The notes beneath the pieces were generated by a model. The model did not search any database, was not told the DNA's origin, and worked only from the letters and a program-made list of their open reading frames with translations. The translations under genes and the position numbers were made by a program. A stretch of DNA of 64,000 nucleotides from sequence record PQ464590.1; one strand, 5' to 3'. Of the stretch, positions 1 to 64,000 are shown one piece after another (the first letter of the stretch is position 1; every line of letters starts with the position of its first letter).

Positions 1-114
1 CGTGGAACTGAATCTTATTGGTAGTGGTGCAGTAGTACTGCCACCTGAAACAACTAAATTCAATGAACCAGTACTAGTTACAATATTTTTAGGGTGATTA
101 AAACTAATACTCAT
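1..114 (-). CDS. Partial CDS running off the left edge; probable virion/fibre protein
   Basis: ATG at 114 with AAGGA SD at 122-126; reads MSISFNHPKNIVTSTGSLNLVVSGGSTTAPLPIRFSST with no stop before the window edge. Function is inferred from composition only. Confidence 0.6.
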   Translation of the reverse strand, partial: MSISFNHPKNIVTSTGSLNLVVSGGSTTAPLPIRFSST

Positions 115-151
115 TAATTAATCCTTTTTATGTTAACTATAATGATATTTA

Positions 152-457
152 TTAGATAAGTCCGTTATCTAAGTCATCAGCTACTGCGTCAATCATATTA
201 GCTGCTAATTTCTTACCCATCTTGAACCATTCTGTTCCAGGGCTTCGAGTAGCATTCATTTGTTTTAGACGTTTATGAACTTCCTTTTCGGCTGCTTTAG
301 CGTCATCAAATTGTACCTCATGATACACTTCATAGTCTCTGAATGGAGATCCTGTTTGATACGTACTAAGGCGAGTTTTCATTTCAGATTTAGACGTGAA
401 ACCGATCTTAACCCATTCAGGCCAAGCAGCATTTGTGATTACGTAACAGATTTGCAT
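152..457 (-). CDS. T5orf172/GIY-YIG-superfamily domain protein
   Basis: Motifs CYVI..., VKIGFT, RL..YQTGSP, E...H..L and EWF match the T5orf172 (MUG113-like) pattern; GGAG SD upstream. Confidence 0.75.
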   Translation of the reverse strand: MQICYVITNAAWPEWVKIGFTSKSEMKTRLSTYQTGSPFRDYEVYHEVQFDDAKAAEKEVHKRLKQMNATRSPGTEWFKMGKKLAANMIDAVADDLDNGLI

Positions 458-487
458 AGTACCTCCATATTATCATGGAAGTATTTA

Positions 488-889
488 TCAGCCAATTTTG
501 AAGTTGATTCCGAGCTTAGATAGTTTGTCGAAACCGCTAACTGGACGTAGTTCAGGTGGGATTTCTGGACGACCAGTATGTTGAGTAGCATAAACATCAT
601 TCAGTACTGGTGCGTCAGCATGTTTTGAATTCAAAATATCTTTATATTTTTGGACATATTCTATGTATGTCATTTCAGTACTGTCACAGTTCATGATATC
701 TTTAATGTAATCGGTTTTCCTGTAACGATATGCCTCTACTGATTGAAATAGAAGTTCCATATCTTCAGAGTACGCGACTAGACTGTAGTCTTCAATTAGT
801 GTTTCGAAGTTACTGAACGCTGATTGAAGGAATTTATTGAAGTGCGGGAACGTGTATACCGTCACTGTCATACCATTTTTAATTTCCAT
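488..889 (-). CDS. Hypothetical protein (133 aa)
   Basis: ORF with AAGGAG SD and a TATAAT box upstream (about 912-917, minus strand); no recognised motif. Confidence 0.75.
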   Translation of the reverse strand: MEIKNGMTVTVYTFPHFNKFLQSAFSNFETLIEDYSLVAYSEDMELLFQSVEAYRYRKTDYIKDIMNCDSTEMTYIEYVQKYKDILNSKHADAPVLNDVYATQHTGRPEIPPELRPVSGFDKLSKLGINFKIG

Positions 890-919
890 ATTTTCTCCTT
901 GTCCTGTATTTAATTATAA

Positions 920-950
920 CAAAAGAAAAGGGACTCATCAAGAGTCCCTT
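920..950 (-). terminator. Intrinsic terminator after the major capsid gene
   Basis: Stem AAGGGACTC-atcaa-GAGTCCCTT (928-950) followed by a U-rich tract on the minus strand. Confidence 0.8.
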
Positions 951-993
951 AGTGTTTTTAATCAAATTATTAGAATCTAACTTACTTCTTCTA

Positions 994-2169: not shown

Positions 2170-2212
2170 TATATATCTCCTTGAAAGATGTTTTCGCTTT
2201 TCAGTATGTTAT

Positions 2213-2218
2213 TATTTA
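2213..2218 (-). promoter_or_regulatory. T4-type late promoter (TAAATA) for the capsid gene
   Basis: TAAATA about 45 nt upstream of the ATG; a gp55 gene is present in the window. Confidence 0.6.
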
Positions 2219-2248
2219 TCACTGAAAAAGATTAGCTTTAAAAAATTA

Positions 2249-3364
2249 TTATTTTTTGGTCATTCCTGCTAGATGTTCAATCTCTTGGATGAACGCTAGA
2301 TCAGTACTGTCCATTTCATTTTCAACAATAGCTGCTCGATTTCCGGTAATAACTTTACCTTCCGCTAGAGTTTGTTTAGCCTGGGTATTAACTGCTGTGC
2401 GGCTATTTTTTGCAGCAGATTCATTTACAGTACCTTTAAGTACAGACTTATGGTACTTCTGGAAATCAGCCTTTAGACTATCGGTTGGGGAAGTCTGAAG
2501 TAGAGATTCCATAATTTGCTTCTGTTGAGGATTTAGAGGTTTAACAAGTTCAGACATAATAGCGTTACGGGCGTTTGTGTCTTCCATAATACGCATTTTA
2601 CGTTGTGCTTCAGCAGCAATTTGTTTTGACTCTTGAAGTTCTAGTTTAATACTAATAACTTCATCTTCATGACTCTTGATTGATTCGGTCAACTGACGTA
2701 GAAGAGAGTTTTCGTTATACTGTTTGCTATGGAATTCATTAGCAAAAGCTTCGAAAATTTTACGACCAAACATATTCTGTTTAGCTTCTTTTAGTTCAGT
2801 TTTGAGAGAAGACATGTTCTTATGAGTAGTTTCAGCGATATATACTGCTGCACTCTCAGATGCACGCTTGATGAAGTTCTGACGAGCTTCAGCAATTTGG
2901 CGGGAACCTTCTGCAATCAATTTAACACGAGTTTCAACCAACTGGCGTTTTTCTTTGTGGAAGTCCTGTAGTTCTTCTGCTAGGATTTTATTACTGAATC
3001 CTACAAACTTACTTAGACTTTCCTGAATTTGTTTACGTTCTTGACGCATACCTTGCACTTCTTCTGCTAGTACTGTGTTAGCAAATGTAGCGAAGTTACC
3101 TAGAGTTTTACGTAGAGTAACACGGTCTTCAGCTAGCTTGGATTTCTCTGCATACACAGCACCCATTTCTTCACTGATGATTCCGGTCATCATCTTGTCT
3201 AGTCCTTCAGTTAGACGGCCTAGATCTTCTTGGTAACGACTTTTCATTTCTTCACGCATTTCAGCAGCTACAGCGGCTTTTTCTTCATTCCATGCTTCCT
3301 GAATTAATGCTTTAGCTTCATCAGAAAGGCTAGATTCGTTTAGAAACTTATCTAATTTCGACAT
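2249..3364 (-). CDS. gp22: Prohead core scaffolding protein, T4 gp22-like
   Basis: Long coiled-coil E/K/A-rich protein between protease and capsid genes; contains L/V-x-E cleavage-like sites (FLNES, VNESA, LAEG). Confidence 0.85.
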   Translation of the reverse strand: MSKLDKFLNESSLSDEAKALIQEAWNEEKAAVAAEMREEMKSRYQEDLGRLTEGLDKMMTGIISEEMGAVYAEKSKLAEDRVTLRKTLGNFATFANTVLAEEVQGMRQERKQIQESLSKFVGFSNKILAEELQDFHKEKRQLVETRVKLIAEGSRQIAEARQNFIKRASESAAVYIAETTHKNMSSLKTELKEAKQNMFGRKIFEAFANEFHSKQYNENSLLRQLTESIKSHEDEVISIKLELQESKQIAAEAQRKMRIMEDTNARNAIMSELVKPLNPQQKQIMESLLQTSPTDSLKADFQKYHKSVLKGTVNESAAKNSRTAVNTQAKQTLAEGKVITGNRAAIVENEMDSTDLAFIQEIEHLAGMTKK

Positions 3365-3416
3365 TGATGTTCTCCTTTAAAGTACTGTTTAAATATAAGC
3401 ACTTTTGATGTACAAA

Positions 3417-3424
3417 TATTTATA
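3417..3424 (-). promoter_or_regulatory. T4-type late promoter TATAAATA for the scaffold gene
   Basis: Exact T4 late consensus in the intergenic gap. Confidence 0.65.
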
Positions 3425-3435
3425 AAAAAAATTTT

Positions 3436-5343: not shown

Positions 5344-7098
5344 TTAGAATGAATCTCCCAAATTATTGGGGTTAAAACCTGCATCTGCTTGCATATTTTG
5401 ATATTCAGCATCAGCACTTTCTAGGTTTCCATCCTCATCCATACCTAAATCCATTCCAGGATCATTAGGTGCGTCAATACCAACAGATGCCAACCCAGCT
5501 TCTTCTTCACCATCTGGTGAAGTTCCGTTCTCGAACGCTCCTGGGTTCTCTTGAATCCAGTACTGTTCATTCTTAACGATGTCTGCTTTATCAAAGCCCA
5601 TCTTCTCAAGAACTGTTTGCTTAGCAAGGAATGGTATGTCATTCAATGGTAGATACGTTTGAATCAATCGTGCATCCAACTCTGCCTGACGATAAGACGC
5701 TAGGTTAATTGGTGGATTAAAAATAACTTCAAAAGATGAAGCACTAATTGTATATCCATTATAAGTCATGTACCGTTTGAATTCTTTATCAAATACTCTA
5801 GCAACTAAACGTTGATAACGCATACATTGGTTGTTGAATCGTAATTCACTAGCCATTGCTTGTGTAGCACCATCACCAAATAATGATACGCCACCATCTG
5901 AACTCGGACCCATAGGTAGATAGGATGATGGTATCTGTAGACCACGAATTAGTTTGTCGTTGAAGTAACGCAAGTCATCAATTTGACCTAAGTTATCACC
6001 ACCAGGTAGTGTTTCAACACTAGAACCACGCCCTTCAGAAGTCTGAGGGAAGAAATAGTCCTCTAAAATACTTAGTGGGTTATATGCTGCGTCCATTAAA
6101 GATGTACTACCACCCTTGTTCGAAGGAATTCGACGCTGGTGGATTTCATTCTTAAATCGTTCTACATATGACATTGCTTGGTGTGTTTGCATGTCACCCA
6201 CATCAATTTTAAATACTCGACGCTCTGGTGCACGCTGTACACGGTAAATGATAATACTATCTTCAAGAAGTTCTTTTTGTTTATAAACTTTAAAGACTTC
6301 TTCTAAAATACTTGTTCCAAAAGGCCAAACTCCATCTTGTCCAGTATTTAGTGTGAGGTGAATTACGTGTTCTGCTGCAACTGGTATAATGTCCATGCGT
6401 CCATTAGTACTGAATGGGTCAGCACTATTTGCACTATTACCATAACCACCACCACCTGAACCGTTACTATACATGTTTCCGTTGGTTGCCATTCCGTTCG
6501 GTACTGCACCTGGATAAGTCATGCGGTCAAAGCCAATCTGTAAATTAGAGAATACTTTATCATGTAAATTCAATGATACATCTCTAATGTAATAAATCAC
6601 TGGGTTTTTACCAGTTGCTTCGTTTACATATACTTGTTCGACATTCATAGGGTTCACCCAGTACCAATCAAAGGTTTCTGGATCTCGAATAAAGAATTGA
6701 TCTCCGTACTTAAGGAGGCCACGAACAATTTCATAAATTCGTGTTTTGAAATCGTTCTGATCAGCCCATGACTCTAATCGGTCTTCTAATGTGGTTACTT
6801 CAGTATCACCAATGTTATCTTTATATTTTATATGAAATGGTAGACCGAAATCTTCAGTACTTTGAGTACAAAAGTCCGCAATAATGTTTAAAGCGGTACG
6901 AATTTCAGGGTCTTGATCCATTTGGTCGTACTGTCTATATCGATCAGTACGATTTGGCAACCCCGTATATACTACGGGGAGATATGATGCGAAGTTTGAT
7001 TTAGAACCAGAAGTTTCTAGACCGGATTTTTTTTGAGGGTCCGGTCTATTCGTTGAAACCTTCGATCTTGCCATTGTCATGTGTCGTTTCCAACTCAT
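5344..7098 (-). CDS. gp20: Portal protein, T4 gp20 family
   Basis: Motifs LLEDSIIIYRVQRAPERRVFKIDVG, EDYFFPQ..EGRGSSVETLPGG.NLG.IDDLRYF and L.IPSS.L. Confidence 0.96.
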   Translation of the reverse strand: MSWKRHMTMARSKVSTNRPDPQKKSGLETSGSKSNFASYLPVVYTGLPNRTDRYRQYDQMDQDPEIRTALNIIADFCTQSTEDFGLPFHIKYKDNIGDTEVTTLEDRLESWADQNDFKTRIYEIVRGLLKYGDQFFIRDPETFDWYWVNPMNVEQVYVNEATGKNPVIYYIRDVSLNLHDKVFSNLQIGFDRMTYPGAVPNGMATNGNMYSNGSGGGGYGNSANSADPFSTNGRMDIIPVAAEHVIHLTLNTGQDGVWPFGTSILEEVFKVYKQKELLEDSIIIYRVQRAPERRVFKIDVGDMQTHQAMSYVERFKNEIHQRRIPSNKGGSTSLMDAAYNPLSILEDYFFPQTSEGRGSSVETLPGGDNLGQIDDLRYFNDKLIRGLQIPSSYLPMGPSSDGGVSLFGDGATQAMASELRFNNQCMRYQRLVARVFDKEFKRYMTYNGYTISASSFEVIFNPPINLASYRQAELDARLIQTYLPLNDIPFLAKQTVLEKMGFDKADIVKNEQYWIQENPGAFENGTSPDGEEEAGLASVGIDAPNDPGMDLGMDEDGNLESADAEYQNMQADAGFNPNNLGDSF

Positions 7099-7113: not shown

Positions 7114-9264
7114 TTATAGGTTTTGAGCAGCAGTGGTGTTCTCTGCAATTTGTCTTAGATATCCACTAGAAGTACTGCTTAATTGGTTAGCTTGCTCTGT
7201 GGCACTCATAAGATTATTTATCACTTTCAAAATGCTCTCTTCCATGCTCTGTTTCTGTTCGAATGCCGGATCAATAGCTGATGTTTGTTCAGGTATCTCA
7301 ACTTTAGTAGGTTTAGTATAGGTTGGAGGCTCCATTACTTTTGGTGGCTGTGGTTTTTTAGGCTCAACAGAAGTTTGTGGTGGTATAACAGGTTTACCAT
7401 TAGGAAGTTGGTTAACTTCTTTAGGATCTTCTCCGGCCCACCAAGATTTTGCACTATCCCACCAGCCAGCAATCTTACTTTTCATAGAATCAAATGAAGA
7501 TTGAATACGTTTTTTCATATCTTCGTAATTGAAGTCCAATTTAGAAACTCCATCGAATATATCACCAACATGAGTGAAGATATTTCCTATAGTTTTCTGC
7601 AATTCATCAGAACTTTTTGACCAACCATCACCAGTTATCATTCCCCAAATAAGTTTTGCAAGACTTCCTGGAATATCAATAATATCCGAGAAGAAATTCT
7701 TAAATGCAGTAGTTAATGGTTCAGTATTTCCGGCAACAATTTTTAATAATTCAGTTGGAATGTTCATCAACACACCAAATGCTCCACCCATTCCTGTATC
7801 CATATAATTCAACAAGTCTTTGAACATTTTAGCTGGTAGCATAAAGATGCTATCGACTGAATCATATGCTTCCATGATATATTTCAATGAATTATCACGT
7901 GTGGTTGCCCATAGCTCTTTAAATGGACCAGTGATCGTGTCCGCAAGCCATGTATTGAATCGTGAAGTGAATTCTTCCAGTACTGGACTAACTTCAGCAG
8001 TGTTTTCATTCAGAAGCTTCATACTGTTTTGGAAATCTTGTAAGAATTTTGCTGCTTGTGTGTTCCCACCATCATATAATGCATCAATTTCTAATTGAAG
8101 TTGATGTTGGTGTTCATCTGTCCATTTTTTCAATAATCTCTGAATAGATTTTGCATCACGTTTTGGTCCATTCTGCAATTCAATCATTCGGTCTTTTAAC
8201 ATTTGTGCGAACTGTGAGTTAAATTCATCAGTTAATGGCTTCAACGTTAGACCTTGTGTATTGAACGCTTGGAATTGTGCACCAAATTGACCCATACTTG
8301 AAAAAACAATGTTCATCTGTTTATTCATTTCAGCAGCGTCATCTTCGGTTTTACCCCAAAATCGAGTTAATGCTCTAGCTGTTGCTTGACTATCAAAACT
8401 ATCAGTCATTCCTTCAAATGAACCCAAAAGCTGGTCAACACTCTTACCGACACTCTTACTTAGTTCAGTCATTTGCCTAACAAATAGATCAGTACTTTGA
8501 GCCTGATTGATATTTCTTAAAGATTCTTGTGAAGCATAAAGTTTTTGATATTTGAAGTTTCTGGCTGCTAGGTCAGCTAATTGCTCTTGAGAAACACCAT
8601 ACATACCATTGATATATTGCAATTTCTGAACAGAGTTCAATAAATTACCAAATTGCTCAACACCATTACCATATGTTCCTTCCATTGTAGCAAGAACATC
8701 GGCGTTCTTTTGTAATGCTTGTCCAAATTGAGCATTACTCATTAAGCTTTTACCAGCAGCACGCTCTAACGTACTCATACCAGTTGCTAATGTTAAACCT
8801 GAACTGTTTAATTGATTATACATTTCAAGTTGGGCGTTCATATAATCATATACTTTCATCCCAGCTTCAACAACAAGATTAAATGCTGATGTTACACCCC
8901 CAATAGCAGGGATTGCTTTTCCTAATGCACTACTTACGCCCATTGCGGATTGACCAAGTGAACCAAAAACGTTAGCTGAGGTTGCATTATTTCCAAGTAT
9001 AGTACTTCCAGCACCTCTCATGTTGCCGAACATACTCTTGAACATATTTGAGAATCGTTTAGAATCACCATGACCAGGTGGACGTGGGCCTCCGCCGCCT
9101 GGACCTCCACCAGCCCCGCCATTTCCACCAGTTCCAGGGCCATTCTTCTTAATAGTCTTGTTCATTTCAACTAAAAGTTCTGCCATAGCAGCTAAATGGT
9201 CATTACCAGTACTGGTTTTTGCGAGGATCTCTTGAAGTAGGTAATCACTCTGTGAAATCGCCAT
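7114..9264 (-). CDS. Probable tail tape-measure protein (716 aa)
   Basis: Helical A/Q/S-rich N-terminal half and aromatic-spaced amphipathic repeats (W/F about every 11 aa); adjacent to the gp26-like chaperone gene. At about 0.15 nm per residue it would give a tail near 105 nm (inference). Confidence 0.65.
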   Translation of the reverse strand: MAISQSDYLLQEILAKTSTGNDHLAAMAELLVEMNKTIKKNGPGTGGNGGAGGGPGGGGPRPPGHGDSKRFSNMFKSMFGNMRGAGSTILGNNATSANVFGSLGQSAMGVSSALGKAIPAIGGVTSAFNLVVEAGMKVYDYMNAQLEMYNQLNSSGLTLATGMSTLERAAGKSLMSNAQFGQALQKNADVLATMEGTYGNGVEQFGNLLNSVQKLQYINGMYGVSQEQLADLAARNFKYQKLYASQESLRNINQAQSTDLFVRQMTELSKSVGKSVDQLLGSFEGMTDSFDSQATARALTRFWGKTEDDAAEMNKQMNIVFSSMGQFGAQFQAFNTQGLTLKPLTDEFNSQFAQMLKDRMIELQNGPKRDAKSIQRLLKKWTDEHQHQLQLEIDALYDGGNTQAAKFLQDFQNSMKLLNENTAEVSPVLEEFTSRFNTWLADTITGPFKELWATTRDNSLKYIMEAYDSVDSIFMLPAKMFKDLLNYMDTGMGGAFGVLMNIPTELLKIVAGNTEPLTTAFKNFFSDIIDIPGSLAKLIWGMITGDGWSKSSDELQKTIGNIFTHVGDIFDGVSKLDFNYEDMKKRIQSSFDSMKSKIAGWWDSAKSWWAGEDPKEVNQLPNGKPVIPPQTSVEPKKPQPPKVMEPPTYTKPTKVEIPEQTSAIDPAFEQKQSMEESILKVINNLMSATEQANQLSSTSSGYLRQIAENTTAAQNL

Positions 9265-10590: not shown

Positions 10591-11025
10591 TGAATATTGC
10601 TTGACGCTGATAGCATCGGAATTATTGTATCGTGAATTTCTGAACAAGTCAGAACGAAAGCGGGTTGCTCTGTTTCTCTCGAATTATCACGGTCATGTGC
10701 AACGGTCGTAGTCTTAGTACGCGTACGTTATAATCTATACAATCAAATCATAACGTTGTTCAAATTTCAGGCGGATCTATAGCCAGCCTTAAATCGAACT
10801 CCCTTAGCAAGTGTGGTAAGGCGTTCCTTATATGTCTATCGAGTGAACGTCTGTCTGCTTATCGCGTTCATTTATAGTGCCGCATTGCCGTGGGTGGTAC
10901 AAACTATGCCATCTCCTAACGGGTTTCTTCTGCACTGCGTAGTCATAGGTCTACTCATCCATCCTCTACATTTTCGAGTGAATTGGGTTTCGCCTGTATC
11001 ATTTTTACTGATCCCATGAGCCTGT
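10568..11025 (-). ncRNA. Candidate structured non-coding RNA (~460 nt)
   Basis: Starts 7 nt after the conserved promoter at 11032-11061 and ends at the hairpin GAUCC-uucauu-GGGUC plus U7 (10590-10568). No credible ORF; several stems contain G-U pairs only on this strand. Confidence 0.5.
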
Positions 11026-11031
11026 ACACTT

Positions 11032-11061
11032 ATTATATCACATTTTATAGATCTATCCCAA
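11032..11061 (-). promoter_or_regulatory. Conserved phage promoter, copy 1 (TTGGGA-N18-TATAAT)
   Basis: TTGGGATAGATCTATAAAATGTGATATAAT; the same motif occurs at four other sites. Confidence 0.75.
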
Positions 11062-11105
11062 AATTATTAAATACTTTACCACATAACAGTACTGAAGGAA
11101 TAACA

Positions 11106-11588
11106 ATGAGTAGAAGAAGACTAAAGGATTCAAAAGATGCTAGTCAGTATCGTTCTGAACTCCTAAAAGAACAAAAAGGATTAGATCCAATCATTAAGAA
11201 ACCAGTGAAAGACGCAGTACTTGACCATAAACATTACGGTGATCAAGAATGTCGTGCAGTACTGGAACGTACCGTGAACTCGTTCGAGGGTAAAGTCCAA
11301 AATGCGTTCAATCGGTATATTAAGCATCTCACCGATGCCGATATAAGCTCCGTATTACGCTCTCTAGCCGATTATTACGAGTTAGACACATCCCACCAGC
11401 CTATCCACCATACGGCCCTCACAATCGATGTGAAGAGGTTTAAAGCCCTACCAGCTAAGCAGCAAATTGAAGTACTGGAAAGCTTTGGAGTCATTCCAGA
11501 GAGTAATGTTAAGAAAAGAGCCAACCAAGCGAGAAAACTCATCAAGGAAGGTAAGCTAGATATGCAATTAATAAAAAAAGGAGCCTAA
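11106..11588 (+). CDS. gp49: Recombination endonuclease VII (Holliday junction resolvase), T4 gp49-like
   Basis: Q.G.DPI, VLDH.H, R.VL.R.VN.FEG and the downstream L..Y...D....PIH pattern align with gp49. Start moved to ATG 11106 after GAAGGA. Confidence 0.8.
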   Translation: MSRRRLKDSKDASQYRSELLKEQKGLDPIIKKPVKDAVLDHKHYGDQECRAVLERTVNSFEGKVQNAFNRYIKHLTDADISSVLRSLADYYELDTSHQPIHHTALTIDVKRFKALPAKQQIEVLESFGVIPESNVKKRANQARKLIKEGKLDMQLIKKGA

Positions 11589-11602: not shown

Positions 11603-13747
11603 TTAGAAAAAATCGTCCAATGTAGTGTATTCCACTGAACTGAAACTGTCTTCTTTGACAATCTTCAAAATCTTTTCAGTCTTATTCAATAATTCCTCTC
11701 TGTGAGAGATAACAAATACGTTTTTGTTACGAATAGCCGCTAGATCCTGGAAAATAGTCCAAGTTTTCATTACACCGGAACTATCTAGACCTACATCAAT
11801 CATTTCATCGATACAAATCAAGTTTATACCCTGATATAATGACTCATAAGTGTCTCGGAACGCTAATGATAGTGCAATATTCACTCTCGTACGTTCACCT
11901 CTAGAGAGTTGTTTGTAATCATATGACTGATCATTCAATGTAATGTCCACACTAAGGTCATTCATGAAGATTACTTGGTGTGAAGAACCTACAGCATCGA
12001 TATAGTACTGTAAACGCGTGTTCAAGAACGAGATATTCTGTTCAATAATACGTTTACGCACATATGAATCTTTATTCAATAGTAGTTTAGCCAGGAAATC
12101 TTGGTGATTAGCTAACTTATCATGCTCATTGAACTCATCATACGACACTGGTTGTAAAGAAGTAGTTCTTAGTGTCTCAATCTGACTTAGGAATTGGTTC
12201 TCTGACTTCATTTCACGGTCTAAATCAGCAATCAATGTGTTATATTGATACTGTAGTGACTTCACATCAGAAGTACTGAACGATTCAGGAACTACCATTT
12301 CAGGAGTACCTTCTAATTCAGCATAAACCGATTGTACTTCAGCTTCATAGATGTTTACTTGAACCTCATCTAACTGTTTCTGAAGTTCCAGTACTTTATG
12401 TTCGTGCATTTGAGCACCAGATAAAGTAGGGTACATAGTATTAGGTTTAGGAGGCATATCAAAGATTTCTAAAGCATCTATCTCAGATTGAGTGTTTTTT
12501 ACCTGTAATTCAGCTACGGCAATATCAGCTTTGAGTGAATCAATGGATGTTTGTACCTGTTCTTTTAGCGTTACATGATTTTGGTCATGTTCAAGAGAAC
12601 CATTACATAGTGGGCACTTATTATCTAAGATATCCTGTAATTTCGCATCTTCTTTCGCTAAGTTCTGTACTAAACGTTCGATTGAACGCTTTGCAGTACT
12701 AATTTGTTGTTCCTTGAATCGTTTAGTATTCAAAGACTCTTTCAACATAGTATCTAACTGGTTCCAAATTTCCAATTCAGCATGTTTTGCAAGTTCTTGA
12801 GCAATATCAACGGTGTTCAAATCCTGAAGTACGTTCTGAACTTCCTCTTTATTTCGAGATAGTTGTAAATCGTACTCTTGGTATTTCTGAACTAACTGAT
12901 TTAGTCTGTTCTCAAGTACTTTACGTGCTTCATTATGTTTGATGGCTTCTTCCGCTTGGGTTGCGGCAACTAATAACTGTTCAAAGTCAACCCCTTCATA
13001 GTCTTTTAGCGAATTGGTGATTCCATCAATCTTAGTACGCTTATTTCGTTCGAATGTATTCGCTTGTTCTTGAAGAGTTTCAATACTTTGTTGAATACGC
13101 TCGTTGGACGCACTAATAGTCTCAATTTTGAACTTCTCTTGTTCTGCAAGTCTCTTGGACTCTTTGTGCATCTCTTTGAGTAGTTCCGCTTTCTCAGTAA
13201 GTTGAGTAATACCGAGTAATTCTTCAATCATATCACGTTGTTTTTGAGCCGACAATGACAGGAACGGTTCGACGTTCGCATTCAGTACTACAATGTGCTC
13301 AAATAGATGTTGAGAGATTCCTAGAATCTCGTTTAGATCCTCTTGGGTATCTTTTTTCTCACCACGTGATTCATCATCAACATTTTCACCATTCAATGTA
13401 TAGAAGTTGAAATACGTGGGATTTCTCCCACGCTCAATTCTGTATTCTACACCATCTTTGATGAAATCCACAAACACTTCACAGTACTTTGTATTCGTCT
13501 TGTTTACTAAGTTCGGTATTTTGATTTCGTTACCGATACTTTTTCCATATAAACCGAAGACGATACCCTGAATGATTGCTGATTTACCTACGCCATTACG
13601 ACGACCTGCATTATCAGCACCGTCTAGTAACACATCGTTGTTTTGACCCAGTACTAAAGAGATATCAGTACTATCTAAGTCCACTACTTGTGGTGCGTTA
13701 CCGAATGAGAAGAAATTTCTCATTGAAATACTTTTTATGGTCAACAT
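11603..13747 (-). CDS. gp46: Rad50/SbcC-like recombination ATPase, T4 gp46
   Basis: N-terminal RNFFSFG, Walker A NGVGKS, coiled coil with CPLC zinc hook, signature LSRGE, Walker B ICIDE and H-loop ISHR. Confidence 0.95.
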   Translation of the reverse strand: MLTIKSISMRNFFSFGNAPQVVDLDSTDISLVLGQNNDVLLDGADNAGRRNGVGKSAIIQGIVFGLYGKSIGNEIKIPNLVNKTNTKYCEVFVDFIKDGVEYRIERGRNPTYFNFYTLNGENVDDESRGEKKDTQEDLNEILGISQHLFEHIVVLNANVEPFLSLSAQKQRDMIEELLGITQLTEKAELLKEMHKESKRLAEQEKFKIETISASNERIQQSIETLQEQANTFERNKRTKIDGITNSLKDYEGVDFEQLLVAATQAEEAIKHNEARKVLENRLNQLVQKYQEYDLQLSRNKEEVQNVLQDLNTVDIAQELAKHAELEIWNQLDTMLKESLNTKRFKEQQISTAKRSIERLVQNLAKEDAKLQDILDNKCPLCNGSLEHDQNHVTLKEQVQTSIDSLKADIAVAELQVKNTQSEIDALEIFDMPPKPNTMYPTLSGAQMHEHKVLELQKQLDEVQVNIYEAEVQSVYAELEGTPEMVVPESFSTSDVKSLQYQYNTLIADLDREMKSENQFLSQIETLRTTSLQPVSYDEFNEHDKLANHQDFLAKLLLNKDSYVRKRIIEQNISFLNTRLQYYIDAVGSSHQVIFMNDLSVDITLNDQSYDYKQLSRGERTRVNIALSLAFRDTYESLYQGINLICIDEMIDVGLDSSGVMKTWTIFQDLAAIRNKNVFVISHREELLNKTEKILKIVKEDSFSSVEYTTLDDFF

Positions 13748-13761
13748 CCTTGTTTCTCCAA

Positions 13762-36229: not shown

Positions 36230-36260
36230 AAAAAGGAGCCGAAAGGCTCCTTTTTTTTTT
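36230..36260. terminator. Bidirectional terminator between convergent genes
   Basis: A5-GGAGCC-gaaa-GGCTCC-T10. Confidence 0.85.
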
Positions 36261-42001: not shown

Positions 42002-42028
42002 AAAAGGAGCCGATTGGCTCCTTTTTTT
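42002..42028. terminator. Bidirectional terminator between convergent genes
   Basis: A4-GGAGCC-gatt-GGCTCC-T7. Confidence 0.85.
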
Positions 42029-53648: not shown

Positions 53649-54581
53649 TTATACCGCCATTGGTGCTTTGATTGTCGCATCTGGATCGTAATTCAGTAAC
53701 TTGAATGAATCCATAGTGAAGGAATCAATATCAGTAACGGTACTGTCAATCCATAATTCAGGTAGTTCTTTCGGTGTACGAGATAGCTGCTCTTTCACCT
53801 GTTCTACGTGGTTGGAATAGATATGACAATCACCACCCATCCAAATGAACTCACCAACATCTAGACCAAGTACTTGTGCTAACATGTGAGTTAGTAATGA
53901 ATAGCTTGCAATATTGAACGGTACACCAAGGAACAGGTCAGCACTGCGTTGATATAGAGTACATGATAGCTTACCATCTACTACAAAGAACTGGCTGAAG
54001 CTGTGGCATGGTGGGAGTGCCATTTTATCTAAGTCACCAACGTTCCATGCGGAAAGGATGTGACGACGACCGAATGGATCGTTCTTTAGGCCATCTAACA
54101 GTACTGCAATCTGGTCAATAGTACGTTGCATAATGTACATACCACTGATGGTTTGTTCAACCATTTCATAACCCATTTCAGTATGTTTTACTACTTCGTT
54201 GTAAATTCCTGGAAGAATTACCACATCACGCCATTCCCGCCATTGTTTACCATATACTGGACCTAGTTCACCATCTAAGTACCCTAGAGCTACACCCTGA
54301 TTCCGATAGTTGTCAGTCCAGATTGTGCGTTTCTCTTCATCGCGAGTACCATGTAGAATTTCACAAAGTCTACGTTCGTCATGGGAACCTTCGAGGAACC
54401 ATAGTAGTTCAGAGGACATTGCTTTCCAAGCTAAACGTTTAGTTGTTGTTGCTGGGAATCCTTTCTGAAGATCGAAACGCATAGTTTGACCAATTAGTTT
54501 GTAGGTTCCGGTTCCAGTACGGTCTTTGCTAAAAGTACCATTAGCTAGTACGTTCTTGTACAGATCGTGTAGTTGTTGCAT
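53649..54581 (-). CDS. thyA: Thymidylate synthase ThyA
   Basis: Motifs [48 protein letters not shown] and GDCHIYSNH. Confidence 0.97.
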
Positions 54582-54834: not shown

Positions 54835-55422
54835 TCACCTGAAGAGTGATACAAATGAATCCATTTGTTTTTGTGTCGTTTCGCGGGAACCTATACCTGT
54901 CCAATTACCATGTGGTGTTGGAACTTCCAGTACTGCTACGAATTCTTTTACATTGTAATCGTAGTAGTATGCTTGCTTAGCGTACGGGTCATAACAATAT
55001 ATTTCAGGTTCTTCATACTGGTCGATGTACATTTGTATTGCCCATGCAGTGCCACCAGCAACTTGTGTTGGCGAAACAACTTCTGCAATGCAATATACTC
55101 GTTCAGTTAGTAGAACTTGAAAACTGTTTCGTGCCAATAGGTTGTACACATATGTACCAGGCTTAGGAACAGAACGCCCCAGAGACTGATTGGCTTTCTT
55201 TAGTTTGTCTTTTACTGTTGGGTCTTGAAGAACTGAATTAGGCAACTTCAGTACTGTATCGTCTGATACATGGTACTTGTGTTTGTCGAATGAGAAATGA
55301 ATTTCTTGGAAACCATTCTCCGAAGCCCAGATACCAAAAAGGCGGTCAGCACCTTCTGCCCCGCCACTATAACAGACATTATTCAGACTCTTCAAACTAT
55401 CATAAAGTTCATCATTAGTCAT
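54835..55422 (-). CDS. SLOG-superfamily (YpsA/LOG-like) nucleotide-binding protein
   Basis: SGGAEGAD glycine-rich loop, LARN and GGTAWA motifs. Confidence 0.7.
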   Translation of the reverse strand: MTNDELYDSLKSLNNVCYSGGAEGADRLFGIWASENGFQEIHFSFDKHKYHVSDDTVLKLPNSVLQDPTVKDKLKKANQSLGRSVPKPGTYVYNLLARNSFQVLLTERVYCIAEVVSPTQVAGGTAWAIQMYIDQYEEPEIYCYDPYAKQAYYYDYNVKEFVAVLEVPTPHGNWTGIGSRETTQKQMDSFVSLFR

Positions 55423-55709: not shown

Positions 55710-56366
55710 TTACGCCTTACGTGCAGCTAGTTCTTTCTTCACAGCTTCAATTGCTTTAGTCTGTGATATACCTTCTGGTAGTTCAATGTAGAACACTTTA
55801 CGTTCAGCATCAGCTTGAGGTGCTTCAGAAGGGCGACGGGTTGGGTCGATAGCGTATGCACGTTCAAAGGTTTCCTTTGAAAGCTGTGCGTACTGTTCAG
55901 CGTCCGCTAGAAGACGATCAACGATAGTATTACGTTCAACACTATCATCATCAACTTTTGGTTTGAATGGGTTGTATTCGGATACAGTACCGTCTTTGTG
56001 AGCTTTAGGAGCAGCTTGTTCTGCGATGCTAGCATTTAGCTCTTCTAGACAAATTTTGTTACCGTTTCCTACGTGCATGTCAATGTCACAAGTGCGTTGT
56101 TTACGAATATAACCGTAACCATGAAGAACATCAAGCATTTTACGTTGGTCCAAATAACCAATCTTGTCCATTACTTCCCATAGGTCAATGGAGTCTTGAC
56201 CACGCCCCATGATTAGCTCAGTAACTGCGTAGTTGTATACTTCTGGAATTGAATCACGGTAGATAACTAGGCAGTGCTTAGGATCATCAGGAATTTCACG
56301 CCATACAACGAAAACTCGTGAACCAGTACTGCGAACTACACCTTCATGGCGGGTAATCTTACTCAT
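55710..56366 (-). CDS. Conserved-looking hypothetical protein
   Basis: Start moved to MSKITRHEG at 56366 (GGTG SD); HEG.VRSTG.RVFVVWRE.P.DP.HCLVI motif; function unknown. Confidence 0.7.
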   Translation of the reverse strand: MSKITRHEGVVRSTGSRVFVVWREIPDDPKHCLVIYRDSIPEVYNYAVTELIMGRGQDSIDLWEVMDKIGYLDQRKMLDVLHGYGYIRKQRTCDIDMHVGNGNKICLEELNASIAEQAAPKAHKDGTVSEYNPFKPKVDDDSVERNTIVDRLLADAEQYAQLSKETFERAYAIDPTRRPSEAPQADAERKVFYIELPEGISQTKAIEAVKKELAARKA

Positions 56367-56592
56367 TATCACCACCCTTTTCTGCTGCTTCTGCTGCTTC
56401 TGCTGCTTCAACAGCAGCATTGTGCTCAGCGATAACTGCATTACTGAACTTGATAAAACGTTCAACAACTGGTGCAACTTTCACTAGGTCTTCAACACTG
56501 AAAGCATTAGCTTGGATAGCAGCTTCCATGATTTTGGTAGCATTGATAATGTCAACCACTTCTAGACTGTGTTGGGTATTTTCTTCACTCAT
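56359..56592 (-). CDS. Small hypothetical protein
   Basis: GGAG SD before ATG 56592; first gene after promoter copy 4. Confidence 0.7.
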   Translation of the reverse strand: MSEENTQHSLEVVDIINATKIMEAAIQANAFSVEDLVKVAPVVERFIKFSNAVIAEHNAAVEAAEAAEAAEKGGDNE

Positions 56593-56702: not shown

Positions 56703-58151
56703 TTATGCATTTTGGTATTTGTTCGCTTCGTATTCGTAGTGAACAGTTTCACCAAACGGTGCAATCTTCTTAGGGTTAGAGTGGATTACGAAGAGAGTCT
56801 TACAGTAATCTTTATCGCCCCATGACTGCCACGGTTCACCGTCTGTGAACATAATCAGTTGTTTTGGTTTGTAGTTGTCATTCTTCATGTGAGTCCAAAC
56901 GGCCTCGAAGTCTGTACCACCACCACCATGTACTGGATATTCGAGAATTTTCTTCTCTTCACCAGTTTTGTAGTCACGTACTGTATATACTTGAGTATCA
57001 AACGTCATGATACGAATCTTGAACTGTTTGAACTGCTTAGTAATACCTAGTACTTCACCGATAAAATCACGTAGCATTTCATTACTGATACTACCTGATG
57101 CATCAAGTGCAATTGCAATGTCAATGTCGTCATCTGGTTTCAGACCTGGGAAGATCGGAGAACCAAAGAACGAACCACTATGACCAAAACCGTTACTCCA
57201 TGAACGACGACTTGGGTTCGAGAAAATAACATCCGATTTCAAGTACGAACGCAGAGTACGTTGCAGTTTAGAACGCCAATCGATTTTCGGTGCTTTGAAT
57301 GTATCAATCATACGTGCGATTTCAGCAGGTGTTCCGCCAGCACGTGCAGCATTCATCATAGCAGTTTTGAAATCTTCCATGTATTCACGACGCTTAGCGT
57401 CTGAAATGTCGTTACCATCAGCATCTTTCTGTGCTTCTTGTGGTACGTCATGTTGGTCGATTGTGCCGCCTTTTCCTTTTCCTTTACCTTTCTTCTTGGA
57501 CTTCTTACCGTTCCCGTTGCCGGAACCGTTACCATCACCGTCCTGGTCGTCACCTTCACCTTCACCTTCTTCGTCACCTTCGCCGTCCTGCTGCTCTTTC
57601 TTCTCTTCGTCTTCGAGAATCTTGTAAATCTCTTCAGCAGTCATACCATCAAATTTAGGATCGAATAGCCATGAAGATTGAATCTGACCAATCTTATCAC
57701 GTACCAGAATCTGGTTGATTGCGTAGTCAGCAGCCTTATTATACAGCTTAGGATCACGCATACCGCGACGTAGGAAGTGATCGTAAGCACAGTGCAGGAT
57801 TTCATGACACAGTACTGCGATAAGGTTCGCATCACTTAGACCATTGAGAATATCATTGATCTGCTCTGTTGTCACGTCATCAATAGACTCACGGAGTGCT
57901 TCTTCGTATTTTTCACGGTCTTCTTGATTCTGAAGACCCATAACGAATTCAACGTTGTAGTAAAGGTGCTTACCATCTACTGCCATAGTACGACACCAAG
58001 TATCGTTAGGTACTGGACGTAGACGTGATGCAAGAACACCAAAGAATGGGAAAGTCAGCATCAGTGAAGTACGTGCCAGAATTAGACGGTCGTTACATTC
58101 TTTCAGTACTGACTCAGGAAGTTTACGAGCTAGATGATCGTGTTTTGCCAT
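56703..58151 (-). CDS. Metallopeptidase-like plus vWA domain protein (DUF2201-like)
   Basis: TMAVDG..LYYN, HEILH (HExxH), N.AADYAIN, acidic/Gly linker, DW...L, MIDAS DASGS and GGGGTDF..V motifs. Confidence 0.88.
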   Translation of the reverse strand: MAKHDHLARKLPESVLKECNDRLILARTSLMLTFPFFGVLASRLRPVPNDTWCRTMAVDGKHLYYNVEFVMGLQNQEDREKYEEALRESIDDVTTEQINDILNGLSDANLIAVLCHEILHCAYDHFLRRGMRDPKLYNKAADYAINQILVRDKIGQIQSSWLFDPKFDGMTAEEIYKILEDEEKKEQQDGEGDEEGEGEGDDQDGDGNGSGNGNGKKSKKKGKGKGKGGTIDQHDVPQEAQKDADGNDISDAKRREYMEDFKTAMMNAARAGGTPAEIARMIDTFKAPKIDWRSKLQRTLRSYLKSDVIFSNPSRRSWSNGFGHSGSFFGSPIFPGLKPDDDIDIAIALDASGSISNEMLRDFIGEVLGITKQFKQFKIRIMTFDTQVYTVRDYKTGEEKKILEYPVHGGGGTDFEAVWTHMKNDNYKPKQLIMFTDGEPWQSWGDKDYCKTLFVIHSNPKKIAPFGETVHYEYEANKYQNA

Positions 58152-59665: not shown

Positions 59666-59695
59666 ATTATATCACATTTTTTGAGTTCATCTCAA
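59666..59695 (-). promoter_or_regulatory. Conserved phage promoter, copy 5 (drives the MoxR-vWA pair)
   Basis: TTGAGATGAACTCAAAAAATGTGATATAAT. Confidence 0.7.
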
Positions 59696-60066
59696 ATATA
59701 AATGAGAAATAATTTTTCAAAGTCGTCACAACAAAATGTCAGTTCAGTTACTACAATCGCATCAGAGATGAAGATGTTGTAACCTTCAACATAATACGGT
59801 GTTTTGCAAATCCTGTCAAGCGATAAAAACAGTACTGAACGATTCATATCTCTTGGTAATGGAATTGATGTGAACTCATAGAGTTTGTTGTCTTTACACA
59901 AGTCTCTTCCGAAATCACTCAATCTCATTCCCCCACCTGCTCTGTAGTTGAAGAATATTGACTTCAAGAGCAATCTATCAGTGAGGTCAGAATCTGGTTC
60001 GTAGACTGTTCGCACATTCGCTAATACATCTAATTGAAACTCAGTGCTATCAGTCTGTGGTATCAT
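59692..60066 (-). CDS. Hypothetical protein (124 aa)
   Basis: ORF coupled to the upstream operon; GG.RL..FG motif; no recognised family. Confidence 0.7.
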   Translation of the reverse strand: MIPQTDSTEFQLDVLANVRTVYEPDSDLTDRLLLKSIFFNYRAGGGMRLSDFGRDLCKDNKLYEFTSIPLPRDMNRSVLFLSLDRICKTPYYVEGYNIFISDAIVVTELTFCCDDFEKLFLIYI

Positions 60067-61694: not shown

Positions 61695-61711
61695 GTTATA
61701 AATCCTTGTAA

Positions 61712-63214
61712 TTATTCATCACTACTATTTAATGCTTTCAAAATTTTGATAGCATCTTGTTCTTTCCCTGATAAAATCAAGTCCGCTGCTAGTAATGATA
61801 CTTTATCACCACGAGTCATCAGTACTGTAATCTTACGAGCTTTAGGGTGTGCTTTTATTTGTTGTGCTAGTGATTCTAATCCAGAATCAACGCCAGCTTG
61901 TGCAGGTTCTTCAGTACTGTTAGGTTCAGAAGGAGGGACATCTACTGGAGAATCTTGTACAACATCTTGTTGAACTTCTACTTCTTCAGCATCTTCTGGC
62001 TTATTAGCAGCACGCATCTTATCCAATATACCAGCAGCGGCACTTTTTGGTGCTAGTTTACCTTTAGAACTAATGAAACGGTCATCACCAACATAGGTAT
62101 ATTCGATTCCTTTTCCTGACTTCCACTTGTCACCAATCTTAACATCAGCAGTTTCATTATATTTGTCAATTTTAGCTTTAGCTGCACGATCAATACTCAT
62201 AGCAGCAGAACTATTCATAGGCTTTTTAGTTTGGGAACTAATCCATTGACCACCTTTTCGAATATACTGCACACCAGCACGAGAAGTAATAAGATATCCT
62301 TCTGGGATTTCAGTACTGGAACTCTCATCTCCTTCAGCTTCACGAACTTCTGAACGTTTTTCTTGACCATATCGACCCATTACTTGTGGTTGGAATGGTT
62401 TCTGAGAAGGTTTTTGTACTTTACCAGCATCTTGAATATCTTTCTCTGGTTTAGCACCAGTTAATGAAGGGAAGTCAGCAGGGTTTTTCTGTACAAATTG
62501 AATATATTGTTGTTTTACTGACTGTGCTTTTGCATCATCTAATACTACATTACCGTCATTATCGCAGAAGTTTTTACCATTCCACTCGGCTCGCATATTT
62601 TTGTCACGCAACATGATAGTACTGTTAACAGGTAGAACATCATTGCCAGTTTCATGACGTAACCAACGAGCTTGACGAATCCCTTCAGCCCATAATTTTT
62701 TAGTAAGTACGTTATCAGCAGTACTCCCATCTCTTAGACTCACAAAACGGGATTGTTTTGGAATAAAACGATATCCTTGAACTTCCAAACCAGCAGGGAT
62801 TGTAATATCTTCTGCATGTGGTGGAAGAATGAAGAAATTAAGAGCGTTCCACTCCTTGTCTAAGGTTTCCCGTGATACATCATAGACACGTTGATCATCT
62901 GCAATCACTTCACTAAGTACTGAAGATTCTGAAAGTAGAATACCATCCTCAGTGAAGCGATTTTTTCCAACATAAGTATAAGTCTTACCAGTGAAATTGA
63001 AGCTTTCTCCAATCATTCGAGTATTATTACGGTTATGTTCGATAATTTGTTTCTTAGCTGCCTCATTCATTTGGGGAGCTTTGTTTGGATCGATCATCTT
63101 CATATTCTTATGATTGAACCAAATTCCTTCAAAATAAATGTATTCGGAACCTTTATGTGAAGTGTAAATGTAGCCATTTGGTACTACTCTATTAGTACCG
63201 AAAAGATTTATCAT
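61712..63214 (-). CDS. Protein with a duplicated ~90-aa domain, probable virion protein
   Basis: Two copies of P.GY..TS..G..Y.....W........M......M/I..AAK..I..(H/Y)N....IG......G..YTYVG..RF. Confidence 0.65.
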   Translation of the reverse strand: MINLFGTNRVVPNGYIYTSHKGSEYIYFEGIWFNHKNMKMIDPNKAPQMNEAAKKQIIEHNRNNTRMIGESFNFTGKTYTYVGKNRFTEDGILLSESSVLSEVIADDQRVYDVSRETLDKEWNALNFFILPPHAEDITIPAGLEVQGYRFIPKQSRFVSLRDGSTADNVLTKKLWAEGIRQARWLRHETGNDVLPVNSTIMLRDKNMRAEWNGKNFCDNDGNVVLDDAKAQSVKQQYIQFVQKNPADFPSLTGAKPEKDIQDAGKVQKPSQKPFQPQVMGRYGQEKRSEVREAEGDESSSTEIPEGYLITSRAGVQYIRKGGQWISSQTKKPMNSSAAMSIDRAAKAKIDKYNETADVKIGDKWKSGKGIEYTYVGDDRFISSKGKLAPKSAAAGILDKMRAANKPEDAEEVEVQQDVVQDSPVDVPPSEPNSTEEPAQAGVDSGLESLAQQIKAHPKARKITVLMTRGDKVSLLAADLILSGKEQDAIKILKALNSSDE

Positions 63215-63226
63215 GATTGTCTCCTA

Positions 63227-63775
63227 TTATGACAGCATTGCTAGAAGCTGCTCACGTTCTGCTTGAGATAGAGCAGATAACTTAGCGTCTAGACCACCAG
63301 CTTCTGAATTTCCTTGTGCTGGAGCAGATTGTGCAGGCTGCTCAGTATTAGTACTGGAGCTTGGCTGTCCTTGTGGTTGTGGTTTAGCAGAATCATCACC
63401 TTGATTGTACTGTGCAGTTGTTTGTTTACGAGCAGCTTGTAGAAGAGCATTACCAACATCTTTAGGACTAAAAGAAAGATTCTGATTAGTTCCTAGAGCA
63501 GATGTATCTAGACCATTACTCTTGAAAAATGCTGCAACATCAGCGAAAGGTACAGAAGATTGTGCTTTACCATATTTACGTCCAATCATTCTTTTGAATT
63601 CTACCCATAGACGGTTAGCTAGTTCACCAGATTCTTTAGCTCCAGCTTCTACCTGACCAGAACCAAACATACCTTTAACTCCACCTTTAGCGGAATCAAT
63701 GGCTGATTGGGTACGAGAATACGGACGCTCATTCAACGGTTCCGCATCTTCAAATAGTTCGTTTAACATACTCAT
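63227..63775 (-). CDS. Hypothetical protein, probable internal head protein
   Basis: LNE-L and LNE-R motifs at the N-terminus; Q/P-rich linker near the C-terminus. Confidence 0.65.
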   Translation of the reverse strand: MSMLNELFEDAEPLNERPYSRTQSAIDSAKGGVKGMFGSGQVEAGAKESGELANRLWVEFKRMIGRKYGKAQSSVPFADVAAFFKSNGLDTSALGTNQNLSFSPKDVGNALLQAARKQTTAQYNQGDDSAKPQPQGQPSSSTNTEQPAQSAPAQGNSEAGGLDAKLSALSQAEREQLLAMLS

Positions 63776-63780
63776 TCGTA

Positions 63781-63999
63781 TTATCCTTTTTTACCATATC
63801 CAGCAGACATGAACTCTGCATAATTAGCTTTCTTTGCTCCTAGTTTATTTAGAGCATCCTGAACTGCATCTTCTGCACGTTCTTGTCCAGCGAGTTCCTG
63901 ACCTTCTGGTTCCGCTTTACCAAATGGTTCACTTAGTACTGGGATATATTCATCCAATTCTAGTTCATCAGCGGTTTCTAGTTCCATTTCAATTGGTTC
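63781..63999 (-). CDS. Acidic protein, 5'-truncated by the window edge
   Basis: The frame stays open upstream of ATG 63987 (EPIE...) to the edge, so the true start probably lies outside the window. Confidence 0.6.
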   Translation of the reverse strand, partial: EPIEMELETADELELDEYIPVLSEPFGKAEPEGQELAGQERAEDAVQDALNKLGAKKANYAEFMSAGYGKKG

Positions 64000-64000
64000 G

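Follow-up and report, generated by a model that had tools for sequence, protein, structure and literature searches.

A highly iterated AGTACT palindrome in Erwinia phage Hallingskeid and its enterobacterial jumbo-phage relatives

Phages are expected to lose short palindromes, which are targets of restriction. A highly iterated palindrome is known in cyanobacteria, where the core of the octamer HIP1 (GCGATCGC) is reported to be methylated by orphan methyltransferases (PMC6105098, PMC6604393). On the protein side, SlmA binds GTGAGTACTCAC and requires G at position 1, T at position 2 and a purine at position 3 (PMC3020112). Here we analyze the hexamer AGTACT and its extended octamer form CAGTACTG, written together as (C)AGTACT(G), in a stretch of 64,000 nt (the window) that corresponds to bases 186001-250000 of PQ464590.1, the genome of Erwinia phage Hallingskeid. 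The genome is 366,158 bp long, the host is Erwinia aphidicola B01_10, and the phage is a "group 2.2" jumbo myovirus, kin of RaK2, 121Q, CBB, and EJP2 (PMC11780129). The window has late and structural gene content, including the major head protein, portal, baseplate, a 3,330-amino-acid virion protein, and tail fibers, and also encodes endonuclease VII and a gp46/47-like nuclease. A search of the literature on CAGTACTG, AGTACT over-representation, and highly iterated palindromes in phages returned no description of this word, nor do the Hallingskeid, CBB, and RaK2 papers contain one.

Abundance, symmetry, and maintenance of the word

A sequence-only reading of the window, made before this analysis, had claimed about 45 perfect copies of CAGTACTG and many 7/8 matches. 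The exact count is 45, compared to a mean of 1.37 and a maximum of 4 in dinucleotide shuffles, and octamers with one mismatch number 152 compared to 28.9 expected. The nine AGTACT positions that it listed in the first 3.4 kb are all correct, and all nine have an outer C or G. The window contains 151 AGTACT sites compared to 23.8 expected and 496 GTAC sites; ranked by enrichment over composition, GTAC leads the tetramer palindromes and AGTACT (7.2 fold) the hexamer palindromes. Word totals were taken over the full 366 kb, hexamer palindromes and neighbor words were scanned in 300 kb, and spacing was analyzed over 350 kb. The whole genome carries 3,916 GTAC, 1,313 AGTACT, and 412 CAGTACTG, corresponding to 3.6 AGTACT per kb (about one per 280 bp) and 1.1 CAGTACTG per kb. 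AGTACT is 10-11 fold and GTAC about 3 fold over-represented (10.3 and 2.8 fold in the scanned 300 kb), and CAGTACTG, of which about 4.4 copies are expected in 350 kb, is 88 fold over-represented, at one octamer per ≈890 bp. In the hexamer scan, AGTACT was the only strongly enriched palindrome, followed by CGTACG at 2.0 fold. AGTACT reaches its lowest density of the genome in the window (2.4 per kb), compared to 5.5 per kb in the early region (275 copies in bases 1-50 kb). Spacing of AGTACT is near Poisson, with a coefficient of variation of 0.89 and a largest gap of 2.2 kb, which fits the notion that density matters; within the window, no positioning linked to start codons was seen in genes.

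The enrichment is a property of the DNA. AGTACT sites in coding sequences (CDS) of the window fall in the AGT-ACT (Ser-Thr) frame 91 times, in the nnA-GTA-CTn (Val-Leu) frame 49 times, and in the nAG-TAC-Tnn frame 10 times, in genes on both strands. When synonymous codons were permuted within genes, AGTACT was expected 39.9 ± 5.9 times compared to 150 observed, with each frame enriched by 3.2-4.9 fold, as had been anticipated from the different frames and both strands noted by eye, and CAGTACTG was expected 2.9 ± 1.6 times compared to 45 observed. A codon-Markov null gave 8.3 ± 2.7 copies of the octamer. The strictest null, a third-base shuffle that leaves unchanged the protein sequence, the codon usage, and all dinucleotides, also those spanning codon junctions, gave 77.3 ± 6.4 for AGTACT and 8.5 ± 2.5 for CAGTACTG. 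Among all octamers of the window scored against a codon-preserving null, CAGTACTG ranked first (z = 25), and the other strong outliers with substantial counts were words overlapping it. The earlier argument against a simple amino-acid effect thus holds under codon- and dinucleotide-preserving nulls, and a codon or dipeptide artefact is excluded by the three protein-preserving nulls, the per-frame counts, and enrichment in intergenic DNA (below). Dependence on the choice of null, confinement to a single frame, and equal enrichment of other palindromes in relatives, the outcomes that the sequence-only reading had named as telling against itself, were examined, and none was found; in close relatives, AGTACT is likewise the only strongly enriched hexamer palindrome. 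Together, these results support the conclusion that the palindrome (C)AGTACT(G) is highly iterated in the manner of HIP1 and is a feature of the DNA, not an amino-acid or codon artefact.

The word is symmetric in its details. AGTACT is preceded by C at 54% and followed by G at 52% of sites, and both flanks are present at 30% compared to 28% from the product of the two; there is no information outside the 8 bp of CAGTACTG. For GTAC, the same near independence holds for A at -1 and T at +1 (151 observed, 132 from the margins), and GGTACC is absent. The half-sites CAGTA and TACTG thus contribute about independently around a GTAC core. CAGTA that is not followed by C is enriched only about 1.6 fold, compared to about 8 fold for CAGTAC, which implies that the palindromic core is essential and that the signal is not a one-strand word; a primase half-site, with CAGTA templating pppACUG, was rejected on the same grounds. 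Moreover, the flank preferences are mirror images regardless of gene strand, which points to two-fold symmetric recognition of duplex DNA rather than an RNA or one-strand signal.

Pressure for AGTACT is strong enough to alter amino-acid sequences. Ser-Thr is the most over-represented dipeptide of the predicted proteome (839 compared to 493 expected, 1.70 fold), and the reversed Thr-Ser is at 0.97 fold; similarly, Val-Leu is at 1.46 fold and Leu-Val at 0.90 fold, and Gln-Tyr is at 1.56 fold. AGT-ACT writes 64% of Ser-Thr pairs (538, where codon usage predicts 124). GTA-CTG, nCG-TAC, AGT-ACT, and CAG-TAC deviate most among the codon pairs, and GTAC occurs in all of the top six and in most of the top ranks.

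We searched IMG/VR with the capsid protein, which gave 80 loci, and scored those of at least 10 kb for palindromes. AGTACT is the top hexamer palindrome, enriched by 3-6 fold, in 17 of 17 close relatives (capsid protein 91-96% identical, at least 10 kb), and GCGC is at zero in the same 17 loci; 121Q, GAP32, RaK2, Serratia phage BF, and Yersinia phage fHe-Yen9-04 are presumably among them. By contrast, loci with a capsid protein 61-73% identical, represented by stretches of about 20 kb, show no AGTACT enrichment, and several avoid GTAC. Avoidance of GTAC is strong in L055, L035, L041, L059, and L032 (capsid 65-68% identical), with 1 copy compared to 59 expected in L055; GTAC-specific restriction therefore is a real hazard elsewhere in this phage group. 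L036 and L041 lack GCGC, yet show no AGTACT enrichment. The preference for an outer C or G is 53% in Hallingskeid compared to 33% in the pooled relatives, and G at -1 is rare everywhere. From these distributions, the trait is specific to the enterobacterial clade, with a fine specificity that varies by lineage.

Codon alignments with relatives at about 66% amino-acid identity showed that shared Ser-Thr dipeptides are written AGT-ACT in 73% of cases in Hallingskeid and in 65% in the relatives. The relative uses AGT-ACT in 75% of positions where Hallingskeid does and still in 40% where Hallingskeid does not, which implies a pervasive pressure and not the conservation of a few sites. In relatives that are 81-91% identical, AGTACT sites were unchanged in 70% of cases compared to 50% for neighboring same-frame hexamers (n = 573), so that AGTACT is lost at about half the rate of its neighbors. 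Ten control hexamers, including one-mismatch neighbors of the word, stayed within about 0.2 of their local controls, and none exceeded them by more than 0.08. Judged from these alignments, existing AGTACT sites are protected, either by selection or by a restoring process.

The window has 1,992 bases of non-coding DNA with one AGTACT (at 3381) and by itself cannot show non-coding enrichment, which was instead seen in the early region of Hallingskeid. There, 5,019 nt of annotated intergenic DNA in genome bases 1-50 kb contain 61 AGTACT sites compared to 1.5 expected, nearly all of them in repeated σ70-type early promoters on the minus strand. Two non-coding copies had been named earlier in the window: that at 3381 does lie in a 5' untranslated region (UTR), whereas that at 11087 falls within an annotated CDS, and its reading as 5' UTR is plausible. 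The early promoters have two layouts, AGTACT-aTTGACA-N9-AGTACTGG-CATAAT and aAGTACTTGCAw-N10-cAGTACTG-TATAAT. Among 46 σ70-like promoters that were found without reference to the word, AGTACT ends 1-2 nt upstream of the -10 hexamer in 21, and a second AGTACT lies 27-30 nt upstream of the -10 hexamer in 14, where it abuts or overlaps the -35 hexamer. Two relative contigs of 348,532 and 345,809 bp, presumably 121Q and RaK2, have the same early-promoter layout, in which AGTACTG is invariant and the rest of the spacer has diverged. Across 350 kb, 58 of about 1,250 AGTACT sites abut a -10-like hexamer, none of them in the window. Several families of σ70-like promoters occur in genome bases 1-23 kb, outside the window, and other families lack AGTACT; two of these have a G+C-rich, partly self-complementary spacer, as in GGGGTTGACTTCGGTTAGCCCCTTTGC-TATTAT and GGCTTGACAGTCTCCCTCTTTTTTGG-CATAAT.

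The same genome avoids many other palindromes. GCGC is absent from the window, where 95 copies are expected, and from all 366 kb, and 22 of the 64 hexamer palindromes do not occur in the scanned 300 kb. Each of the 22 has four or more G or C bases and corresponds to a familiar type II restriction site; they include CAGCTG, CCATGG, CTCGAG, CTGCAG, GAGCTC, GCATGC, GGATCC, GGTACC, and GTCGAC, and CGATCG is also missing. GAATTC (1.7 fold) and GATATC (1.5 fold) are not avoided. Host restriction could explain the loss of GCGC, as could protection of the phage against a nuclease of its own that cuts the DNA of the host. For comparison, a 50-kb sample of E. coli K-12 (bases 2,000,001-2,050,000) contains 0.22 AGTACT, 2.0 GTAC, and about 7 GCGC per kb and no CAGTACTG, so that the AGTACT density of the phage is at least 16 times that of the sample. 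Relative to expectation, the K-12 sample is the mirror image of the phage, with GTAC at about half (101 compared to 195) and GCGC at about twice (357 compared to 182) the expected number. Derivation of GTAC from HhaI-type GCGC by double deamination, or as a by-product of GCGC purging, was considered and rejected. It would not account for the 73% usage of AGT-ACT or the slower loss of sites, it is opposed by L036 and L041, and the CpG would be gone after the first deamination, leaving the second step undriven.

A proposed DNA-binding reader and rival explanations

Among the options raised by the sequence-only reading (methylation-directed repair or conversion, a recombination signal for gp46/47, or a binding site for a packaging or nucleoid protein), a protein binding site fits the data best. 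We tentatively propose, with a probability of about 0.4, that (C)AGTACT(G) has been selected as the site of a DNA-binding protein that is two-fold symmetric and specific to the lineage. We infer that such a protein would be encoded by the phage lineage, and as a dimer it would bind the CAGTA and TACTG half-sites around the GTAC core in a sequence-specific manner. Natural selection would then keep word density high across the RaK2/121Q/GAP32-like clade of enterobacterial jumbo phages. Because sites occur genome-wide and fixed copies occur in promoters, this reader would act both on phage DNA as a whole, which it may mark or coat at a word density at least 16 times that of the host, and on early promoters, where the -35 hexamer lies between two copies 20-22 bp apart and where the reader could switch transcription. 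In a variant that we consider unlikely, AGTACT saturation and total GCGC absence together would form a sequence-encoded identity tag, read by phage proteins to distinguish phage from host DNA, in a T4-superfamily clade that lacks base hypermodification. If so, reading of the tag could spare phage DNA from a phage nuclease, direct transcription shut-off or early-promoter switching, or choose DNA for packaging.

Several points weigh against a dedicated binding protein. Pfam scans of annotated regulators and of genes beside the phage sigma factor yielded no candidate reader; the DNA-binding domains in these scans were just the sigma factor itself and a DksA-type zinc finger. Intragenic AGTACT sites in 350 kb showed no clustering, helical phasing, or pair-distance peak, and so gave no structural sign that binding is cooperative. 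In part, a TG-type extended -10 element could account for the copies in promoters, and only about one early promoter in two contains AGTACT. A repair process that restores sites would likewise slow their loss, and the evidence that the word is unmodified consists of a single published Tombo analysis, inspected by hand (PMC11780129). Finally, a symmetric enzyme such as a topoisomerase, nuclease, or methyltransferase would give the same statistics.

This last point is the core of a rival that we regard as improbable, on a par with the identity tag: the word would be the preferred site of a symmetric phage DNA enzyme, such as a T4-type topoisomerase II making a 4-base stagger over GTAC, a nuclease of replication or recombination, or the packaging machinery, and an abundance of sites would make decatenation, recombination-dependent replication, or packaging of the 366-kb genome faster. 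Two-fold symmetry with a 4-bp core, an even spread with no AGTACT-free gap above 2.2 kb in 350 kb, and selection of the density type all agree with this proposal, and the genome encodes topoisomerase II subunits, a recombination set of the UvsX/UvsY/gp46/gp47 type, endonuclease VII, and a large terminase. However, nothing links any of these enzymes to GTAC, the fixed placement beside -10 and -35 hexamers is left unexplained, and motif-linked nicks have been reported just for another phage of the same set (PMC11780129). A somewhat less probable rival is a HIP1-like process, in which a methyltransferase would mark GTAC or AGTACT and very-short-patch (VSP)-type repair or conversion would restore near-cognate sites. 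The slower site loss is what restoring repair predicts, the abundance of one octamer per ≈890 bp is HIP1-like, and the phage does encode two methyltransferases, a PF05869 Dam-type adenine enzyme and a 285-amino-acid C5 enzyme with a short variable region. No modification has been reported at GTAC or AGTACT, however: comparison of native and amplified Hallingskeid DNA by nanopore sequencing found only two marks, 6-methyladenine in GATC and 5-methylcytosine (5mC) in CCWGG (PMC11780129). About 3,900 GTAC sites would make such a modification obvious. Nor is there a strongly depleted precursor word, as a VSP-like sink with depleted precursor and enriched target would leave, and that candidate was rejected. 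Eight of the nine classes of one-mismatch neighbors of AGTACT are at 1.2-2.7 fold in the scanned 300 kb (AATACT/AGTATT 1.36, AGCACT/AGTGCT 1.6, NGTACT 1.8-2.7), and AGGACT/AGTCCT, at 0.69 fold, is the only one below 1. These two results argue against the HIP1-style model and against methylation-directed repair as first suggested from the sequence; in addition, no vsr-like gene is found among the annotated genes, and RaK2 DNA has been reported as CpG-methylated. A mild excess of CCAGG with a halving of CTAGG/CCTAG does show that some Dcm/VSP-like footprint can be seen in this genome.

Considerably less probable than these is a host protein as the target, for example titration or activation of the nucleoid-occlusion factor SlmA, or of another enterobacterial regulator. 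AGTACT is part of the SlmA consensus, the trait is found only in phages of Enterobacterales, and early promoters must work with host proteins only. Positions 4-6 of the consensus match the phage word. However, 366 kb contain zero matches to GTRAGYRCTYAC, and AGTACT with SlmA-type flanks is under-represented (33 compared to 73 expected). Position 3 needs a purine, where the phage has C in 53% and G in 5-7% of cases, and positions 1 and 2 are not enriched; SlmA sites as such were therefore rejected. Other enterobacterial phages are not known to share AGTACT enrichment, which also counts against a host protein. Least probable, and largely refuted, is the view that the word has no function of its own and is a by-product of codon-pair or translation preference, palindrome purging, context-dependent mutation bias, or spread of a promoter element. 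Ser-Thr codon pairs do account for 60% of the window copies, the genome has been sculpted by avoidance of 22 hexamers, and the word overlaps the TG-type extended -10 position. Yet AGTACT is enriched in all frames and in intergenic DNA, its flanks are symmetric whatever the gene strand, and no avoided word forces the choice of AGT-ACT or GTA-CTG. Moreover, L036 and L041 lack GCGC without enrichment, sites are lost more slowly than matched hexamers, and just 58 of about 1,250 adjoin a -10-like hexamer. The frame, intergenic, loss-rate, and strict-null results thus largely refute a by-product.

Sites in the window and neighboring features

The sites in the window (positions 1-64000) are scattered over late and structural genes on both strands; CDS strands are given as (+) or (-), and frames as the dipeptide encoded. 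Near the left end, CDS 488-889 (-) carries CAGTACTG at 602-609 (nCA-GTA-CTG, Val-Leu) and 676-683 (AGT-ACT, Ser-Thr), and Ser-Thr copies follow at 1224-1231 in the major head protein gene (994-2169, -) and at 2302-2309 in CDS 2249-3364 (-). Upstream of the latter, the 7/8 match cAGTACTt at 3380-3387 is in true non-coding DNA: on the minus strand, it falls within a 5' UTR, after the late promoter TATAAATA (3417-3424) and before the Shine-Dalgarno (SD) sequence and ATG (3362-3364). This promoter is of the T4 late type, on the minus strand, 53 nt upstream of the ATG of CDS 2249-3364, a gene that is flanked by the head protease and major head protein genes. The portal gene (5344-7098, -) has at 5558-5565 the only perfect copy in the CAG-TAC-TGn (Gln-Tyr) frame, and CDS 7114-9264 (-) has copies at 7978-7985 (Val-Leu) and 9207-9214 (Ser-Thr).

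In the annotated endonuclease VII CDS (11016-11588, +), the copy at 11087-11094 lies 12 nt 5' of an in-frame ATG at 11106 that is preceded by the SD sequence aagga, and is probably in the 5' UTR; a second copy, at 11257-11264, is Val-Leu. The start was probably annotated too far upstream, at 11016, and ATG 11106 would give a protein of 160 amino acids, close to the 157 amino acids of T4 endonuclease VII. A cluster of five AGTACT sites at 13650-13881 (copies at 13650, 13667, 13835, 13867, and 13876) covers the 5' end of the gp46/SbcC-like gene (ends at 13747), the 3' end of the gp47/SbcD-like gene (starts at 13762), and the short gap between them. The late sigma factor gene (14783-15646, -) has a Val-Leu copy at 14912-14919. 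Ser-Thr copies are found at 16335-16342 in CDS 15766-16497 (+) and at 19586-19593 and 20471-20478 in CDS 18990-21698 (+), and CDS 22694-26155 (+) has two Val-Leu (22980-22987, 24180-24187) and two Ser-Thr copies (24661-24668, 24826-24833).

The giant virion protein gene (26231-36223, +) carries Ser-Thr copies at 27541-27548, 33253-33260, and 35494-35501 and a Val-Leu copy at 30066-30073. CDS 36260-38557 (-) has one Ser-Thr copy (37384-37391) and two Val-Leu copies (38255-38262, 38456-38463), and CDS 38671-40167 (+) has a Val-Leu copy at 39527-39534. Two abutting copies, AGTACTAGTACT, occupy 40962-40973 in the tail sheath gene. Single copies occur in CDS 42027-43121 (-) at 42063-42070 (Val-Leu) and in CDS 43131-43742 (-) at 43376-43383 (Ser-Thr), and CDS 45490-46356 (+) has Ser-Thr copies at 45561-45568 and 46014-46021. 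The tail fiber gene (46468-50955, +) contains six copies, all Ser-Thr, at 46881-46888, 47130-47137, 47583-47590, 48597-48604, 49842-49849, and 50394-50401.

Toward the right end, Val-Leu copies lie in the thymidylate synthase gene (53649-54581, -) at 54099-54106, in the DprA-like gene (54835-55422, -) at 54928-54935 and 55249-55256, in the HNH endonuclease gene (56703-58151, -) at 57810-57817 and 58104-58111, and in CDS 59692-60066 (-) at 59830-59837. CDS 55710-56420 (-) has a Ser-Thr copy at 56324-56331, and CDS 61712-63214 (-) has a Val-Leu copy at 61820-61827 and Ser-Thr copies at 61912-61919 and 62311-62318. The HNH endonuclease has 482 amino acids and is encoded between an ATPase gene and small hypothetical genes. 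Elsewhere in the genome, at least five further HNH genes are present, and these enzymes may be homing endonucleases.

Outside the window, the C5 methyltransferase gene lies at genome bases 104901-105758, and its product has a very short variable region, as in Dnmt3 catalytic domains. CCAGG is at 1.55 fold and CTAGG/CCTAG at 0.52-0.55 fold in the genome, a weak footprint like that of Dcm and VSP repair in a lytic phage that is methylated at CCWGG. The 5mC of Hallingskeid at CCWGG contrasts with the CpG mark reported for RaK2.

Comparison with known systems

Hallingskeid carries about 1,300 ScaI and about 3,900 RsaI sites that are apparently unmodified, despite having purged GCGC and 22 hexamers. 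The benefit must be large, as the word reshapes phage proteins and is kept across several genera, and discovery of a reader would bring a new DNA signal of genome-wide extent into phage biology. In practice, RsaI or ScaI should shred the DNA of these phages, and many common enzymes would not cut it; AGTACT density provides a simple signature of the clade in metagenomes; and recoded or engineered derivatives of jumbo phages that are candidates for therapy may lose fitness if the word is removed.

The word resembles HIP1 in form. Both are octamer palindromes that occur every few hundred to about a thousand bp, far above the expectation from composition, in coding DNA in all frames and in non-coding DNA, and both are conserved as traits of a clade. 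The sequences differ, however, and the Hallingskeid word belongs to a lytic phage and not to a cell, is also a fixed part of early promoters, and has no reported modification, unlike the methylated core of HIP1. Uptake signal sequences (USS), DNA uptake sequences (DUS), and Chi are likewise short words that occur about once per kb, are kept because a protein machine reads them, and mark "own" DNA. USS reportedly bias peptide composition (Findlay and Redfield, 2009), as AGTACT does for Ser-Thr and Val-Leu. In contrast to AGTACT, a viral palindrome whose reader is only proposed, these words are asymmetric, orientation-biased, and cellular and have known readers.

SlmA resembles the proposed reader in that its site has AGTACT as the central hexamer and is recognized as a palindrome by a dimeric helix-turn-helix protein, but the flanks that SlmA requires are absent or disfavored in the phage. 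Hydroxymethylcytosine of T4 is a functional analogy only: it is a genome-wide self-mark in the T4 superfamily, and the mark of Hallingskeid would be a word frequency and not a chemistry. Lastly, AGTACT and GTAC are the same sequences as the sites of ScaI and RsaI, and Hallingskeid avoids other type II sites while some relatives avoid GTAC; compared to restriction-site avoidance, the sign for AGTACT and GTAC is reversed, without a reported protecting modification. The AGTACT word thus is best filed as an over-represented-word or highly-iterated-palindrome signature in a lytic phage clade, with a sign opposite to the usual avoidance.

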